DNA of 63,722 nucleotides, filler included, from Reticulomyxa filosa (Eukaryota; Protista; Foraminifera), in NCBI GenBank assembly GCA_000512085.1. It is 18 parts of 18 records of this genome, joined end to end, with 100 filler letters (N's around TTAATTAATTAA, not from the genome) between each part and the next. Parts side by side here need not be neighbours in the genome. Positions count along the whole stretch, not along the records: positions 33,984 to 38,070 come from ASPP01018149.1; 17 more parts are not named here. One strand, given 5' to 3'. Positions 2,530-38,170 of this stretch are shown here, one piece after another. Positions within the stretch are counted from its first letter, which is position 1, and each line of letters opens with the position of its first letter. Below the pieces are notes generated by a model. That model was not told the origin of the DNA. It did no database searches and worked only from the letters and a program-made list of their open reading frames with translations. A program made the position numbers and the translations under genes.

Positions 2530-5430
2530 ATAGAAAAAAAAAAAAAGTTGCTATTTTAAAAACAGAAATAGCAAATTTGTTGAACAGTACTTTGACATCG
2601 TTAAACAAATGGGACAAAAACTACAGTGGCAGGATCAGAGAGAGTAAGAAAGACAGGAGCAACAGGTCAAACACTGAACGAGGCAAAGAAGATAAACCAA
2701 TCTCTAAGTGCTTTAGGAAATTGCATTAATGCACTCACCACACCACATCGCACACATGTGCCATTTCGGGTAAGCAAAATAATATAGACTCGCAATGAAC
2801 TACTCTCTTTTTTTTTTTTATTTATTGTTAGAATTTTTTTTTTTTTTTGCTTACAATATGTATGGCCATAGGATAGCAAGCTGACATTTTTGCTAAAAGA
2901 CTCGTTAGGGGGAAACACAAAGACCACATTATTGGTAAATTGCAGGTCTGATAATTGGGACATTGAAGAAACAATTTCTACATTACGATTTGCGTCCAGA
3001 GCCAAGCAAATCAAAAATGATGTCAAAATCAATAAAGTCTTAAGTGTAAAGGTATTTTTTTTTTCCCTGCACGACTTCACAAAAGTAAAACGGGAGGAGG
3101 AAAAAAAAAATGATCGAAAGTACATGCCAAAAAACTTACAATTTTTGTTGCTCCGCAAACGAAATGAACTTTTTTTTAAAGAAAGGAGGGACTATGGCGA
3201 CAAAGGGAAAACCTCATCGATGGAAGTTATTGATGTGCTGATAGGAACTGGAATTTATGGTACTTATATATAAAAGCAAGCTGAAGGCCGCCAATATGAT
3301 GATCTCACGCGTGACACATTTTTTGTTATTGTTGAGCAGTAACGAGTTTGACCCGGAGAGAGACAAGCCACAGTTATTTAATCTCCTACAACATTTGCAA
3401 AACAATAAGTCTGATACCTTTGACAACGCACGATCTCCATCTCGCTCAGACAGATCAGTTGATGATGCGTCAACTCCGAAACTTTTACATTCGCCTCCTT
3501 CTACACCTGTTTTAAAAAAAAAACACTTGCCGTTACACCTTTCGCCGCCGTTGAAAACTCGGCCTCAGTGGCCACGTGGCAAATCAATTGGGAAAATTAA
3601 TCAAGAAGACAATTTTGAGAACAGAATACATATACGTGTGGATAGCGTTTCTCCAAAGAAACCCACTTTTAAAAGATATCAAACAGCTGAAGAAACAAGC
3701 AGCAGGCTTGTGAATTTTTGTTTTTTTGGGAAAAACTAGCAACAAAAAAGCCGAAAATTTTACCACATTGTTTCTGCGTAAACTCAAGACAAAAAAATAT
3801 ATGCTGTGTTTTAAATTAGAAGAGAAAAAAAAAAGCAACAAAATTTTGCCAAAAAAAAATTTCAGGGATATACATGAGGAGTATGAAGAACCAAAAGAAA
3901 TCGAAATAATGCAAGAGTTGAAAAAAGCATTAGAAACAAAGGAAAAAGAAGTTTTCGAGCTAACAAAAGAAGTGCAAAAATACAAAGAAGAAAGCTTGGA
4001 AATCACTCGAGAATTAAATTCACTGAAATATGTAAAAGCACAATTAGTTAGAGAAATTGAAGAGCTTAAAGATGCAGTAAAACAGCACAAAGTGTTTAAA
4101 TATACTTCCCATCAAGCACTTCGCATTCGCACTCCTCCTGCAGAAGAAGAAGTTCAAAAGCAAATTAAGCGGTGGTCTCGTTTCAACGAAGCCGACAGTT
4201 GTGCAATTGACTTGGGCAGTGAACTAGAAATAGCAAGGCAGCTATTGCTCATAACTCCTCAAAGCAAAAGCTGTATAAATACTGAAATGCATTCTTTTGA
4301 GTTGTCTGCCCTGCAAAGTGAAGAATACGCCACCGACAGGCCAAACAACACAGAAGAGACCACACGAATCGACTTTGACAGTGAACAGCAGCAGCTGCTT
4401 GCAAATGTACAAAAATGCAAAGAGCATATACAAGCGCTAAACACTCAAGTGGACACTTTACACAATGGGAATGATGAAATACTTAAAAACCGATTGGAAC
4501 TGGTATTGTGATAACTAAAAATAACTTTTTTTAAAAGTTCATTTGACCCCTGTCTTGATGTTGTGTTACTTAGTCGGATTGGAACAAAGAATTGCAGCAG
4601 CAAATTAATATTCTTAAGCAAAAATCACAGCAGCAAATGTATGAGCACGTAACTGCAATTAAAGTTGTGAAGTGTCAAACCAAAAAAAAAACATTTTCAG
4701 ACTATTGAGATTGTTTATGAATTCTAATATATGAAATTGATAGAAAGATAGCCCTACAACAAGGCAGGAGAATATTACAAAAACAATGGATTTACTTAAC
4801 ACCCCACGACTGCGAGATTCTGCTTTACACATTCCTTTGCCAATTTCTCCATCCTTCTCACAAAACCCGATCATTGTAGAAAAAGTACCAATTGATGAGG
4901 AAGAGCATTGGAAATATCGAGTAAATCAAGCGAAGGCAGTAATGTATGACCTACAAACCAAGTTGGAGGAATATAGTGAAATTTCTCAAGGATGTGATAT
5001 CAATAGTTTCAAAGCCATGATTAGCGCTTCTGTGCTAAGGTACAAAAAATTCTTGCGCAATGTGCAAGCATAGGGGCTTGTTGTTGTTTCTTCATATGTG
5101 TGTATACAAAGATACCTTATGTTCGCTTAAGATTTTAAAATAAAACCTACAGTTAAATATAAATGCACTTAAAATATGAAAATAGTGCACTCTCATTTTT
5201 GGAAAATTCTCCACTTGATAACTCAATGGAAGCAAAAACTCTACAAAGAATAAGTGAACTGGAGCTGGAAAACAAAAAATTGCTCCAAAAGTTGGATAGT
5301 ATGAAACAAACATGGGCTGCTCATTTTGACGCTCTATTAACCGCACAACATGATGACAAAGACTCTCCCTCTAACTACTCTCATGATACAAATTCAAGTA
5401 AAAGTGCAAAGCGCTCCAAATTTGCCAAGG
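1530..5430 (+). CDS. N-type kinesin motor protein with coiled-coil stalk, multi-exon, probably 3' truncated by the contig end
   Basis: Spliced exons give VVARFKP, P-loop [27 protein letters not shown], switch I NKESSRSH, switch [46 protein letters not shown] and [13 protein letters not shown], joined by GT-AG introns. One frameshift at the T6 run 1667-1672. Downstream exons are E/K/Q-rich coiled coil. Confidence 0.95.
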
Positions 5431-5633
5431 TTAGTTTCAATTTCTGTGCTCACAGACAAAAAATGTTGTCTTGGTGCTTTCATACGAATAATGGTATCTT
5501 TAGTACATTTCACTAATTAAAAAAAAAAAANNNNNNNNNNNNNNNNNNNNNNNNNNNNNNNNNNNNNNNNNNNNTTAATTAATTAANNNNNNNNNNNNNN
5601 NNNNNNNNNNNNNNNNNNNNNNNNNNNNNNCCT

Positions 5634-6083
5634 AACAAGCAGCCAAATTTACTGCTTTGGTATTTGTTCAAGATCATCCAGGACAATTGAAATCTGCAAC
5701 TAATGATGGAAAAGGCAACTATGAAGTATAAAGAAGAATTTACCACATAGATTCATATTCGAATTGCTAAAACTTCTTATCAAATGTTGGAAATCAAATG
5801 GAAAATGAAAAAGCAACAAACAATACAAAAGTTGAGGGCACCACTTTCATTGAGACCGGTGACCAAGCTGAAGTTGTATTTGCTCCAAAAATGACATTAG
5901 TTGTGAGCTATGCAGAAGACTATTGAGTATGTCAAAAAGAATTTCTTGTATATATATATGATGTCATGCATAATATAATAATTTATATTGTATCGTGCTG
6001 TTATTATCATTATAGGAAGAATGGCTGCAATGTACACAAACTCGTTGATTATGTTGGGAAAAGTTTTGCAGTAATACAAATGA
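5634..6083 (+). pseudogene. EFL: EFL (elongation factor-like GTPase, EF-1alpha paralogue) domain III pseudogene
   Basis: Reads FTALVFVQDHPGQLK ... IHIRIAKTSYQMLEIKWKM / KATNNTKVEG..FIETGDQAEVVFAPKM, then an intron at about 5927-6015, then GRMAAMYTNSLIMLGKV. The WKM-K-T-x2-K segment and the x-N-x3-MLGKV ending are EFL-type rather than EF-1alpha-type. In-frame TAG at 5748-5750 plus frameshifts. Confidence 0.8.
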
Positions 6084-6857
6084 TAGAACAAAATAATTGA
6101 AACATGCTGCGATACAAAAACTTTTAAATGAATAGTTATTTTGTTCTAATAATTCTCTTTATTTTTTAATAACATTTTTTTTCTTTTTTTTAAAGGGTCC
6201 AATCATTCATTTGCAATTTCTCGATAAAAAAATTTTTAAAAATGTGGGTAGGCTGAGACCCTGGAGGTTAGAATTTTTTTTTGGCTACATCCGAAAGTAT
6301 GTAATTTTTGAATTCTAAAACTCGTATTGTATTATCGAGTTAGTCTTTAGCTTTTTTAATTTCTTTTTTCCATTCCAAAAAAAAATATAATTAACAAAAA
6401 AAATATGCATCCGACCAAAGAGACAATAACTATTAAACAGGAATCGTTTTCATTGCTTGGTCTTGGTTTTCTTTTTCCAGGACTACATCCGCAAAAGGTT
6501 ATTTTCCCATAAACAATGCAAATAAACGCATGAACAACGTACAGTCAGATGGATCCAACTCCCCAACCGTCCATGCACGGGTTGCAAAGCTCATTAATTT
6601 GGTAGTGACACTATGATGTTGACCTTTGTCCATAAACGAGGTCAAAGTATCCACATCTTGAAGAAAGTACTTGATTTTTTCCAGCAAGTGACAGATTTGT
6701 GGGGATTGCTTGCTTTTCGCTACCAGTTGCAGCTGACCATAGTTATCCATTAAAAAGNNNNNNNNNNNNNNNNNNNNNNNNNNNNNNNNNNNNNNNNNNN
6801 NTTAATTAATTAANNNNNNNNNNNNNNNNNNNNNNNNNNNNNNNNNNNNNNNNNNNN

Positions 6858-7466
6858 TGCCACAGAACAAAGGCCGCAATAATTTGGAGCTAATGTCCTT
6901 TTTCTTAAAAAAACTATATTATTAAATATATGTGCATTGACAACTGCATACAAACAAAAAATTGTTTTATGTCCACAAAGACAAAGCACAGTTTGACGAA
7001 AAAAAGTATAGTTAATACCAAGATTGTAATGGTATGAAGTCAATATGTGATTCTAAGAGTTTTCGACTACCAATGCAGTTGTTCAAAAATTGCACCGATC
7101 ATTGTGATTGTTCTTTGTTCATTGTTTCATTCGGATTATTGCAATTGCTATTGTTGATATCTGTGTTGATGCTAGAGATGTTGATGTTAATTGATACAAG
7201 ATCTTGTATTACAGGGTCTTTGCTTATCTAAGCTGCTTGCTAAGATTGTGGATTTGTCGATTTGCTTTCTGCAGTAGTGACTGCAATATTAACACGTGAT
7301 AATCTAATTTCTTGAGTTTCGCTTGGTCTTTGCAATGTCGAGCAAGCAAATATTTTGTCAATGCTAAATATCGGTCTCGTAATAATGAGTAACTCATTTG
7401 CAGTAACAAGGTCTCTGTCTGTGTTAGGACATGCCTTTTTTTCAATACGTAAACTTCAATTTCCAT
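6858..7466 (-). pseudogene. degraded coding sequence (coiled-coil and N-rich region), unknown family
   Basis: The 80-aa ORF continues in another frame through an internal TGA to ...DFIPLQSW, then a GT-AG intron, then TLAPNYCGLCSVA at the contig end. Confidence 0.3.
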
Positions 7467-33983: not shown

Positions 33984-35232
33984 GGTTCGTTGTATATTTG
34001 CATATTACCTTTTTTCTGAATAATTTGGAATGAATTGAACTCCTGTTTATGTGTGAATGTCAAAAAATATACAAATAAAAATTTATTTGAGAAATTTTTT
34101 GGTGTAAAATTATTAACTGAACAACAATTTGCTAAATATTCCCTATCAAAATGATTTACTGTGCGGAAACGCCAAGTATGATTGAGAATGAGACAAGCCC
34201 ATTTGGCATGCGCTTGATCAATATCAATGTCATTATACAATTGAATATGAACATTGAATTCCAATGATGAATTTTTTGGATTTCCAACTTGTAATGATCT
34301 TATTTTTAATTTATTTTCATTAAATAACATTATTGTTCGATGTTGATAATCAAATAAAATCAAATAGTCTTTCCATTTTTCATTCAATAACATATACGCT
34401 CTTGTTGGAATATCAACTCTTGTTTTATATCTATTTAAAATGATGGTTATATCATTTGTCTTATTGAAAATAAAATAAACAAATATATATAATCAATACA
34501 GGATTTGTAGATTGATCATTGTTTGATAACAATTCCATAGATGTGAAATTTGAATACGATTATGTTGATAATACCAATTATTATCATATCCTTTTTTAAA
34601 CCCATAATATTGTAACTGATTTTCCATATCCACAAAAACTTTTTCCAAATGCGCGCCTAATGAATGACATTTTACTTTTAAATTATTGTATAAAGCTTGT
34701 TTATTAATTTGACGATATTTGATATGTTTAGGATATTTGAAAATATTCCATAAAATATGCAAACATATTTCTCTCAATATTTTTAATTCATTTTCTTCTT
34801 TCACCCTATCATTTTACAAATTATTTTACTTTACATATTTGTTTTATATTTGTTGATATTATTTAACTCATTCAAGCTGCGAGTATCACAAATCTCTTTT
34901 AATTTCTCGAATGTATCTGCATAAATTTGATTGCAATTTTCCCATGTTTGTGATATTGTTGTTTTTTCAAATTTAGTACCAAAATCTTTGAATAATTCCA
35001 TCAAATGGTGTTGTTGTTGTAAATTTGTACTTTATCAAATATTTGAAGCAAAAACAATTGATGATATTTTTGTATATTAAAAAAAGAGAAAAGAAATTTC
35101 TTGTTACGTGTTCTCTATTAGCCATGTTAAAACGGTCTTTGTCTTTTGAATATCTCCTTTAAGCCAGTTTAATGCATCTGAAATGATCTCTTCACTTATC
35201 TTGGGGAATGTTTTTTGAAGCTGTTCAAACAT
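33984..35232 (-). CDS. CUE-like x2 plus PUB-like domain protein (3' truncated)
   Basis: Exon 1 FEQLQKTFPKISEEIISDALNWLKGDIQKTKTVL has the CUE FP...L pattern. Exon 2 is a second similar helical unit. Exon 3 ICLHILWNIFKYPKHIKYRQIN...LQYYGF fits PUB NIxxxPxxxKYRxI...LGF. Introns splice in frame. Confidence 0.7.
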
Positions 35233-35640
35233 GATAAAGTTAATTGCAAAACATGACCCTTTTTTTTTTTGAAAGTTCAAAAATTTGATTTAGAAATATT
35301 ATGATTAAAAAGATATTTTGTCTAGTTTTAATGAATTAGCACCTATCTATCGATAATTTCCTCAGCATCAATTCAATTTAGCCACTTGTCCAACTTTAGC
35401 AACAGCTCGAATATATTTGAAAACTATAAGTTTTTAACTTTTAGTATCAGAATGAATATTTAACTTTTCAAATTTTCAAAAAAAGAAGAAAACGTAATTT
35501 TTTCATGGTTTTCTACACTTTTTAAACAAAATATAGGACATGTAGATATCATTCAAAAATATTTTAATTTTCATGAAAATGTTTATAGTGAGATCATTTT
35601 ATTGTGGTCGATTATGCATCAGCATCTTGGATGGGATTTA

Positions 35641-36901
35641 TCAACTTTTATCAATATCATTGCGTCCATTTTCCGACAACGTATTCATAACATCAGTGAT
35701 GGACAAAAAGTTTTGATTAACCAATGATTGGGCAAATTCTTTAGCATCATCAGGACGCGTTTGATACAAATATGTCATAATGTAATTAAAGAAATTTTTC
35801 TCGTCAATATTGATACTTGCAATTTGGCCAGTTTGATCAATTGTGAGAAAGCCATTAGCTTCTACATTTGGCACTACCAAAAGCACTGTTGTCTAAACAA
35901 TTATTTTTGCAAAGATCAAAATACAAATTCAACTTTACCTCTTGAATACACTCAATCATCTCAAAATAAGTCTTAACTTTGAAAATTTGTGAATTAAACA
36001 AGCATTTGCCAGTGGAAATATCAAAGAAGAGGACAAATCCTGCTTGAGTGAAGGCATACAAAAAACGACAATCGGTGCTTGGTAACATAGAAACAATGAA
36101 ATCGTTTGGATCCTGAAATCGAATTATAGCTTGCACTTTATGAGATGTGCTTCCACTATAATCACTAAGCTCCATTATGAATAATTCCATTATATCCTTA
36201 TTTACACATTCAAACACATTACAAAAATGAATGTTTAATCCAAAGAATTTTGTTGTTGTTGTTGTTTCTTTCAATTACTTTTTTTTTTTAAAAAAATAAA
36301 AATCAATTAAAATCTAAACTTTATTTGGTTTCGCGAAGCAAAATAAAGTACATGGAGACTTTCGTCCACTCAAAGTGGCTTCAACAAAACATCCGCCATA
36401 TGCATTCATTTTTGGTTGGTAGCATTTATGTTGCGCGCTGTACAATTGCAAGACATGTTCAATTTTTTGTGTTTCTTCATTTTTCATGGTTCCCTGCAAG
36501 AACATCCAGTTGCAGTCCTTGCTTGAGTCGTAATTGACAATTTGAAGTTGGCGTTGTTCTGCTTCTATTTCAAACTTCTTTTCAGGATCTGCTACAGCTT
36601 CTTATTTTCCCAGCCGCGTACAAGAAAAAAAAAATATGTGTTAATATCTGTTACATTTTTCACAAGCCTCCATCGCCCTCTCCTCATTGCCATTATTTTC
36701 CACTCTTCATCATCAAAACATTCACACAATCGGTACCTTCCATACTCCAATGGAATACTGCAAGACTAGTTATATATGCAATGGTGCGATCGTTCAACCA
36801 TCTCCAAAATAAAATCTCGCTATCCGCATTCGCCGCTTTCATTTTTGACCTCAAGTCAAGATTATACACTTGCAAAATATTTCTTGCTTTTTGATTTATT
36901 T

Positions 36902-36988
<87 letters not shown>

Positions 36989-37671
36989 GTTACAATGTAA
37001 AGGAGAAATAAAATAGACATCAAATGCAAAATGAAACAAATTACCTCGCAAGGCCAATACCTTTTTCAAAAAAAAAAAAAATGATCATGTCTACTAAATA
37101 AATTATTTTTAAAAAAAGGAAATATAGACTGAACATTGCTTATTGGGTTCAAAATGGCAGAGTCCGCAGACACAGGCAATGTCTTTGCTGTTTTAGTCGC
37201 AATGCTGATGATGTGAATCATGCTATCTTCTTTGATAACAATGGAGCTCGAATTTTCTGCTGTAATTGCACCTAATTTTATTGGCTGTTGAGATATTCCT
37301 AGATCTGACAACTTTTTTGTTTGTTTGTAAAGCGTCATTATTGTTATTATTATTTTTTTTTTTTTAAAAAAAAGAAAATTTCTTTTTTTATTTGTTTACC
37401 ATAAAGATTTGTTGTATCTTCATCAGTGACATAACATAATCGACAACAAGTCTACCCAAATCACGGACCCATCCTAATTTTATGTTTGATATTCGTATCC
37501 AATGTTGAATAATCATTTCAATCTCTTCTACTTCTGTCTGATTCAATCATAAATCACACAAATCAATGTAATAAAAAATCTAAAGACAACAACTTTCTGA
37601 AAGATTGCAATGAAGCTTACTAATACGAGTTTCATTGAAGCTTGTTTTTCATTGGTGAGAGCAGTCGTCAT
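35641..37671 (-). CDS. chimeric protein: WxR-x4-LGW helical module plus clathrin heavy-chain terminal beta-propeller and linker, no clathrin legs
   Basis: Exons 37671-37621, 37537-37400, 37311-37135, 37060-37045 (16 nt) and four more splice in frame with GT-AG. Clathrin motifs: LSDLGI, SADSAILNP, VLALR, LQVYNL..KMKA, FWRWL..AVFHWSME, QIVNY, LQLYS, TLFCFA, NDFIVSM, T.AGFV..FDI.TG. Stop at 35641-35643. Confidence 0.9.
36903..36988. repeat. intronic (AAT)n-(ATT)n fold-back microsatellite
   Basis: About 21 AAT units immediately followed by about 7 ATT units, inside the intron after the 16-nt micro-exon. Confidence 0.9.
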
Positions 37672-38170
37672 TCTTTGCTTCTTTTGTATTTTCTCTTGAG
37701 CTCACCTTAGATGCAAAGATAAAAAAATATTTGAACTTTTATCTCAAATCAAGTTTTTTTTAAAAAAGACCTACAAACAGTGCAGTTTTAAATATGGTTT
37801 TGATTTAGTTTTTTATTACGTCTTTTCTAATTGTTTCAAACATTGCAACTATAGAATGTTGGATAGTCTATACATAACAAATAAAAATTTTTAATTTATT
37901 CGACGAGGCAATATGTTCCTTGTCATAATACTTTTTTTTTTAAGTTTATATTGAAGTTTGTTTTCCATTAATAAGGTAATCATTTCTTCAGATTTTTTTT
38001 TGAATTTGAGTCAGATGATAAAAGACGAGAATGTTTGAATCTGTTTAGATTAAAAAAACAAAGGGGTTGTNNNNNNNNNNNNNNNNNNNNNNNNNNNNNN
38101 NNNNNNNNNNNNNNTTAATTAATTAANNNNNNNNNNNNNNNNNNNNNNNNNNNNNNNNNNNNNNNNNNNN

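Follow-up and report, generated by a model that had tools for sequence, protein, structure and literature searches.

Gene model and clathrin identity

Contig ASPP01018149.1 of the naked foraminiferan Reticulomyxa filosa (assembly GCA_000512085.1) carries a gene whose predicted product joins a leader to the propeller of the clathrin heavy chain and lacks the clathrin leg. The entire contig (4087 bp, about 28% G+C) forms positions 33984-38070 of the stretch of DNA analysed (the window, 63,722 nucleotides with filler), and all positions below are those of the window unless a locus is named. The gene lies on the minus strand (37671-35641). Reading of this strand confirms eight open exons (E1-E8) with usable splice sites and compatible phases, as an earlier interpretation made from the DNA alone (the sequence-only reading) had proposed. 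The coding sequence of 1275 nucleotides (nt) gives 424 amino acids, or 437 with a long form of E7, laid out as a 51-residue leader, a complete seven-blade clathrin terminal domain (TD) and a tail of 45 residues (Table 1). For comparison with other loci the contig was taken in reverse complement, as retrieved through exact protein look-up, and is called L001.

The clathrin identity of the propeller was established with searches made exon by exon, not with the joined spliced protein. With phmmer against the PDB, that is, the sequences of solved structures, the exons match the clathrin heavy chain at residues 16-77 (E3, E = 0.24), 87-133 (E5, 9e-12), 138-219 (E6, 2e-7), 255-299 (E7, 0.03) and 302-348 (E8, 0.005). 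The matches are singly weak, but they stand in perfect order and are thus together strong evidence for a complete seven-blade TD. The predicted product contains a complete clathrin TD, collinear with solved residues 16-348 as in heavy chains of the CHC17/CHC22 type. The micro-exon E4 is demanded by the reading frame and by homology to SKVIALKA, and inside poorly conserved introns it is 94% identical to a second leader-bearing copy (L003) and 81% to the R. filosa full-length clathrin (L002). The short form of E7 agrees with L002 (…VSK/TTMFLAV) and with other clathrins; an alternative in-frame donor at 35939 adds 13 residues and is the one that the public model takes.

The sequence-only reading had described the propeller as a divergent clathrin. 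It is not unusually so, being 72% identical in amino acids to L002 over 193 aligned codons (78% in E6; 68% in E3, which is 56% identical to L003), and the full-length R. filosa clathrin, too, has diverged from that of animals. We take the peptide sites of the TD to be the clathrin-box (T87/Q89/F91/K96/K98), the W-box (F27/Q152/I154), the arrestin site (R188/Q192) and site 4 (E11). By alignment, Q192 and the groove residues Q89, K98 and Q152 are kept as in the clathrin heavy chain, and the substitutions K96R, F91Y and I154V are conservative. The window copy has R188H and E11Q in common with the full-length gene, and T87I and F27L are changed in the window copy.

The public model of the locus, ETO16529.1 (P0006, RFI_20810, 265 residues, ‘hypothetical protein’), spans the 3' half only. 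It begins at an internal Met in E6, includes a piece of one intron and continues into a predicted 3' extension, so that the annotation indeed misses the first exons, as had been noticed. The extension uses, after 35653, a weak donor (A/GTTGAT) that overlaps the TGA and leads to two small downstream exons, the second of which is a frameshifted clathrin-leg relic. If used, it would put about 35 residues in place of the final one and the protein would still be legless. Downstream of the TGA an AATAAA lies at about 35600. We regard ETO16529.1 as a partial, mis-spliced model and advise its replacement.

Table 1. Features of contig ASPP01018149.1 in window positions; clathrin residues follow heavy-chain numbering.
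Feature	Position	Strand	Content
E1	37671-37621	-	start codon and 17 leader residues MTTALTNEKQASMKLVL; donor GTAAGC
E2	37537-37400	-	leader part and former clathrin exon 1
E2, leader part	37436-37537	-	34 residues TEVEEIEMIIQHWIRISNIKLGWVRDLGRLVVDY; no counterpart at the full-length clathrin locus
E2, former clathrin exon 1	37400-37435	-	V and MSLMKIQQIFM; old start codon 37432-37430
E3	37311-37135	-	TD blade 1 region, clathrin 16-77
E4	37060-37045	-	16-nt micro-exon, VLALR and 1 nt
E5	36886-36737	-	clathrin 87-133, including clathrin-box groove residues
E6	36591-36320	-	clathrin 138-219, including W-box residues Q152 (kept) and I154V
E7, short form	36196-35978	-	clathrin ~225-299; donor GTTAAG
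E8	35892-35641	-	last propeller blade and tail, ends TGA
E8, first part	35892-35779	-	last propeller blade, clathrin 302 to ~338
E8, tail	35778-35641	-	45 residues homologous to clathrin leg ~518-562, then TGA
Leg-repeat relic, non-coding	35426-35356	-	FKYIRAVAKVGQVAKL, clathrin ~725-740; 84% (blastn) to L002 7300-7373
Weak donor of ETO16529.1 and TGA	35641-35660	-	A/GTTGAT
Region of the exons added in ETO16529.1	35460-35560	-	two small exons
Microsatellite, intron 4	36903-36968		perfect (ATA)22
74-residue gene call	36776-37000	+	L001 1071-1295
Downstream gene	34073-35232	-	L001 2839-3998; 328-residue product

Parent gene, lost leg and acquired leader

E6 was queried against 1.8 billion representative proteins and gave 50 matches, the best of which are other R. 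filosa proteins and proteins from foraminiferal transcriptomes. The top match is ETO04402.1 (‘clathrin heavy chain’) on contig ASPP01029409.1, the locus L002, and directly after it on this contig comes an 835-residue model with Clathrin_H_link and Clathrin repeats. In tblastn with a canonical clathrin of 1721 residues (P0015), L002 aligns to residues 11-1135, up to the contig end. Hence, L002 is the full-length clathrin gene of R. filosa, for which the sequence-only reading had advised a search. Its annotation splits the gene into models of 241 and 835 residues, and at about 6595-6625 of L002 a 1-nt frame change at an A-run is needed for the conserved …KNPEFLLDYLRNRGDREEDAELQ… frame, which is due to a sequencing error in the homopolymer or else to a real lesion.

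Four collinear blastn blocks connect the two loci: L001 641-1061 with L002 4103-4514 (73% identity), 1167-2289 with 4760-5936 (71%), 2308-2425 with 6492-6609 (80.5%) and 2645-2715 with 7300-7373 (84%). The window gene has therefore arisen from L002 by duplication, together with its introns, and has since diverged; both genes have their introns at the same positions and share the micro-exon. Homology to L002 sets in at 37430, on the third base of the ATG with which MSLMKIQQIFM begins, and the open reading frame (ORF) of L002 opens at the identical point (MSQAPQSPLKAQQILQ, then an intron, then LSDLGI…; ATG TCG ... CAA CAA ATC CTT CAG/gt) with an in-frame stop upstream. The suggestion that MSLMKIQQIFM was the original clathrin start is borne out in this way.

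In L002 a single exon encodes the last blade, the linker and the beginning of the leg, and of this exon the segment 5940-6476 (179 codons) is without a counterpart in the window. The deletion is in frame, with its junction at 35779/35778. Numbered from the PDB matches (L002 5826-6371 = residues 302-480; 6372-6608 = 483-545), it takes away clathrin residues ~339-517, which is the whole linker. The last 45 residues of the window product (MTYLYQTRPDDAKEFAQSLVNQNFLS…) are homologous to L002 LAYVHQMRRDDVKEFAQSLIDQSFLS…, that is, to clathrin ~518-562 by tblastn. The protein does not, therefore, stop just after the linker helices, as the sequence-only reading had it; our own first assignment of the tail to the linker (clathrin ~340-380) was overturned by the paralog comparison and the PDB numbering.

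Just before the window stop codon there are 20 nt fewer than in L002. After it, the residual similarity to L002 carries stops in the homologous frame, and the 71-nt leg relic is broken by 1-nt and 2-nt deletions. In the comparison with L002 and P0015 we find, unlike in the clathrin heavy chain, no alpha-zigzag linker (Clathrin-link / Clathrin_H_link, ~331-494), no CHCR leg repeats (PF00637, seven in the heavy chain) other than the 45-residue coding relic and the 71-nt frameshifted one, and no light-chain-binding proximal leg or trimerisation domain, as homology to L002 or P0015 does not extend beyond 35356. The description of the product as a legless clathrin TD holds.

Also unlike the heavy chain, the window gene begins with an additional N-terminal leader of 51 residues, made of E1 and the first 34 residues of E2. 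Nothing resembling it was found in the 4 kb upstream of the L002 start. The leader recurs on contig ASPP01018489.1 (L003, 1940 bp), whose alignment with the window contig begins 32 nt before the E1 ATG and reaches into exon 6, inside which L003 ends. L003 holds both leader exons and the same junction of the leader with MSL..KIQQIF. E1 encodes MTTALTNEKQASMKLVL in the window and MTTPVNNKKQALMQLVL in L003, and E2 encodes TEVEEIEMIIQHWIRISNIKLGWVRDLGRLVVDYVMSLMKIQQIF and AEVNEIQVIVQHWIRILNIKLGWIHDMDELVVDYAMSLLKIQQIF, respectively. The two copies agree in the context of the E1 ATG and in both splice sites of intron 1, the donor GTAAGC and the acceptor …GAATCAG. The leader part of E2 is about 70% identical at the protein level and free of indels, and its flanking introns have two gap events each. 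Both the foreign leader directly before the old start and the existence of a further copy of the fusion, which the sequence-only reading had raised, are thus seen in the genome. The annotation of L003, ETO16199.1 (‘clathrin heavy chain 1, partial’), is a model without the leader and exons 1-4.

Searches with the leader, which had been taken for the cap module of a WD40 family whose genes lie outside the contig, gave no match in Pfam or the PDB, nothing usable in the ESM Atlas, and no match in a large protein collection among proteins of 29-145 residues, a range that full-length WD40 proteins exceed; the queries for the last were the 52-residue window ORF and the 83-residue L003 ORF restricted to the leader, which reach proteins of up to 91 and 145 residues, respectively. 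AlphaFold2 models E2 alone as a single long helix with a confidence score (pLDDT) of 96. We set this model aside and do not count it as fold evidence, because short peptides are often over-predicted as helices. A protein of Bolivina (P0004) is a single ORF with two clathrin units and a short N-terminal extension before each. By eye these extensions (…LIFGYLRQHK…DIVLDYI; …LIYGYLRET…IIINHY) resemble the leader, and an ancient shared module was considered and rejected when BLASTP gave no alignment.

Two further features of the contig are apart from the clathrin gene. A gene call of 74 residues on the opposite strand matches a plus-strand ORF that passes through the perfect (ATA)22 microsatellite of intron 4; with its poly-N/poly-I run across the repeat it is almost certainly spurious. 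Past the leg relic the contig holds a gene unrelated to clathrin, one exon of which gives a sub-threshold match to the PUB domain (E = 0.019).

Selection on the copy and competing explanations

Exons and non-exon sequence were compared in segment-wise alignments with a Fisher test on indel events. Between L001 and L003 the exons are 78.2% identical with 0 indel events in 806 nt, and the non-exon sequence is 68.8% identical with 14 in 561 nt. Between L001 and L002 the values are 79.4% with one event (6 nt, in frame) in 972 nt for exons, and 63.3% with 16 in 646 nt outside them. The excess of indels outside exons is significant in both pairs (4e-6 and 5e-6, respectively).

The ratio of nonsynonymous to synonymous distances (dN/dS) was obtained with the Nei-Gojobori method from counts made for each exon and then added up across the 193 shared codons. 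It is 0.24 for L001-L002 (synonymous distance, dS, 0.62), 0.48 for L001-L003 (dS 0.47) and 0.32 for L002-L003 (dS 0.54), all below 1 with p ≤ 0.001. A three-taxon decomposition with bootstrap gives 0.36 for the branch of the window copy (95% confidence interval, CI, 0.19-0.81), 0.14 for L002 and 0.64 for L003 (CI 0.33-2.2), the highest of the three. The sequence-only reading would have given way to a ratio near 1 combined with a lack of expression; neither the pairs nor the window branch show such a ratio. By synonymous distance the two leader-bearing copies, L001 and L003, are the closest pair. Amino acid identity had placed L001 nearest L002, which is discarded, as L002 is merely slow-evolving. 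Taken together, the data argue that selection protected the propeller and ceased protecting the leg.

We suggest that the window holds a clathrin duplicate that has gained a new leader, has lost the linker and leg, and retains an open, constrained propeller, and we give this reading as a whole a probability of about 0.6. Its parts differ in strength. The structural and evolutionary description, as deduced from the alignments, is very probably correct; that the locus is a currently functional gene is a somewhat better than even proposition; and translation of the leader is what we favour by a modest degree.

Several observations weigh against this reading. A Pfam scan with single exons finds no clathrin family, Clathrin_propel included; we ascribe this blank to exons too short and too diverged for a 37-residue repeat model. 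The change of the W-box residue F27 to L occurs in the window copy only. The window copy is under weaker constraint than the parent (branch dN/dS 0.36 and 0.14, respectively). No RNA run was found in the sequencing-run listing searched, and the E1-E2 splice and the 3' end are predicted. The only confirmed relative of the window leader (…IIQHWIRISNIKLGWVRDLGRLVVDY) is the leader of L003, between L001 and L003 intron 1 matches E1 and E2 in conservation (84% and 78-83%, respectively), and the dN/dS of E1 and E2 together, 0.45, is of marginal significance (p = 0.05). Finally, decayed clathrin fragments such as L004 (ASPP01025322.1, 1320-2011; ETO08139.1) indicate that deletion-ridden duplicates are common in R. 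filosa. In L004 no intron separates exons 5 and 6, gaps interrupt the sequence, and some 170 nt further downstream a piece of the distal leg follows (L002 8232-8392); the locus has the look of a dead relic, intron-less, retrocopy-like and heavily deleted.

The strongest competitor is an unprocessed pseudogene, that is, a decaying clathrin duplicate whose propeller exons have not yet been hit and which makes no functional protein. It would account for the removal of the linker and legs by large deletions, frameshifts and stops, and the protein evolution faster than in the parent, the example of L004, the empty run listing and a public annotation limited to a partial ‘hypothetical protein’ all suit it. 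The state of the exons speaks otherwise. We mutated them in neutral simulations at the genome base composition (4000 trials, 417 whole codons): at the synonymous branch length of 0.27 about 13 new stops are expected and 0 of 4000 runs stayed free of them, and even at 0.05 substitutions per site the chance of an intact frame is 3% (P = 0.03). The 417 whole codons of the window copy contain no stop. Moreover, the indels are all outside exons or in frame, the splice sites and the 16-nt micro-exon are kept, the 179-codon deletion is itself in frame, and the branch dN/dS reaches 1 or more in just 0.6% of bootstrap replicates. We consider the pseudogene a minority explanation, though one to be taken seriously.

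Less probable still, and in our view unlikely, is a real gene with a non-coding leader, in which the old Met (MSLMK…) would serve as start codon and a bare TD would be made, with E1 and the opening portion of E2 as 5' untranslated region. The conservation of the MSL start in all three copies fits this, as do the lack of a homolog of the leader in any library searched and the conservation of intron 1, which may simply reflect a young duplicate. On the other side, L003 conserves the E1 ATG, its context and both splice sites of intron 1, and in L001 and L003 alike this ATG shares the frame of the propeller and no stop intervenes. Indels are absent from the leader exons and number four in introns 1 and 2 (L001-L003, p = 0.04), the dN/dS of 0.45 points the same way, and a scanning ribosome would meet the E1 ATG first.

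An assembly chimera, in which the leader-clathrin or deletion junctions would be artefacts of a fragmented, repeat-rich assembly, is very improbable: the contig is short and the assembly highly fragmented, and L002 itself shows the apparent frameshift at an A-run, but the same leader junction stands on an independently assembled contig differing at about 22% of exon bases, so that the fusion is not a shared artefact and the suspicion of misassembly at 37400-37440 falls away, and copies that are 20-29% diverged are too far apart for cross-assembly of reads.

Proposed origin, function and family context

For the duplicate with a constrained propeller the alignments indicate the following sequence of events.

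Step 1: A duplicate of L002 gained two new 5' coding segments, which form the 51-residue leader directly before the old start codon.

Step 2: The linker was then lost by the in-frame deletion of 179 codons.

Step 3: The remaining leg was lost via further deletions, frameshifts and a stop codon, leaving an open, constrained remainder of about 424 residues with the leader, the seven-blade TD and the 45-residue leg relic.

The tree of exon 6 places duplication and leader gain within the Reticulomyxa lineage. The four R. filosa copies form one clade (94/98), in which L002 sits on a zero-length branch and L001 with the pair L003 and L004 makes up a derived group (91/85); the tree is built on 90 columns only, and most of its other forks are unresolved.

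Lacking the proximal leg and the trimerisation domain, the product is unable to make triskelia or cages or to bind light chains, in agreement with the sequence-only reading, which had denied it cage formation. The product is presumably a monomer. As Q89, K96 (as R), K98, Q152 and I154 (as V) are retained, docking of clathrin-box and W-box peptides is still possible, and it would be expected to proceed much as in the full-length R. filosa clathrin. Recombinant TD fragments (1BPO, residues 1-494; 1C9I and 1UTC, 1-359/363) are self-folding monomeric propellers that bind clathrin-box, W-box and arrestin peptides, and we infer the same behaviour for the window product. These fragments are laboratory constructs that include the first linker helices, whereas in the window gene, a natural locus, the linker has been deleted, the tail is a leg relic and the leader is foreign; its protein evolves about 2.5 times faster than that of the parent copy on ASPP01029409.1.

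A monomeric binder of adaptor peptides seems the most economical interpretation of the product. It would compete with true clathrin for adaptors, thus acting as a regulator or decoy; alternatively, it would couple adaptors to a partner of the leader. Any such specific decoy or receptor function we put forward only tentatively, from the retained residues and the domain layout.

In other eukaryotes, too, the propeller occurs without full legs, as a portable module outside the cage-forming chain. In Nonionella stella, P0007 combines the TD and linker with a vWA domain. In Bolivina argentea, P0023 has before its TD an N-terminal region that by eye resembles a RanBP2-type zinc finger (no Pfam match). 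P0010/P0057 (L006-L008) and P0013 (L009), which come from complete transcript-like contigs of four SRA runs, join the TD to a disordered region and a SAM domain. These have other partner domains than the window gene, are independent fusions outside the R. filosa clade of the exon-6 tree, and none carries the R. filosa leader.

Most often the clathrin heavy chain is encoded by one full-length gene of high conservation, and known paralogs such as CHC22 retain the whole triskelion architecture. Our literature searches found no paper on natural terminal-domain-only clathrin paralogs or on such fusion proteins, and nothing relevant on Reticulomyxa clathrin or WD40 families. It is a speculative possibility that in Reticulomyxa, and perhaps in foraminifera generally, the TD serves as a free-standing, shuffled module, and that an expressed family of leader-capped legless proteins (L001 and L003 at least) tunes adaptors or links them to a non-coat partner. 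If true, this would be a natural class of clathrin decoys or receptors, of which we found none in the literature searched.

The locus also illustrates how a gene can arise: by duplication, by gain of 5' exons and by deletion in steps. Three stages of this course, namely the full-length parent, the truncated copies and the dead relic, survive in the R. filosa genome. A propeller-only derivative that selection maintains, equipped with a new leader, would demonstrate that clathrin can lend its adaptor-binding hub to uses outside the coat, and would offer a natural competitor for probing adaptor-clathrin coupling in a giant, traffic-intensive amoeboid cell.

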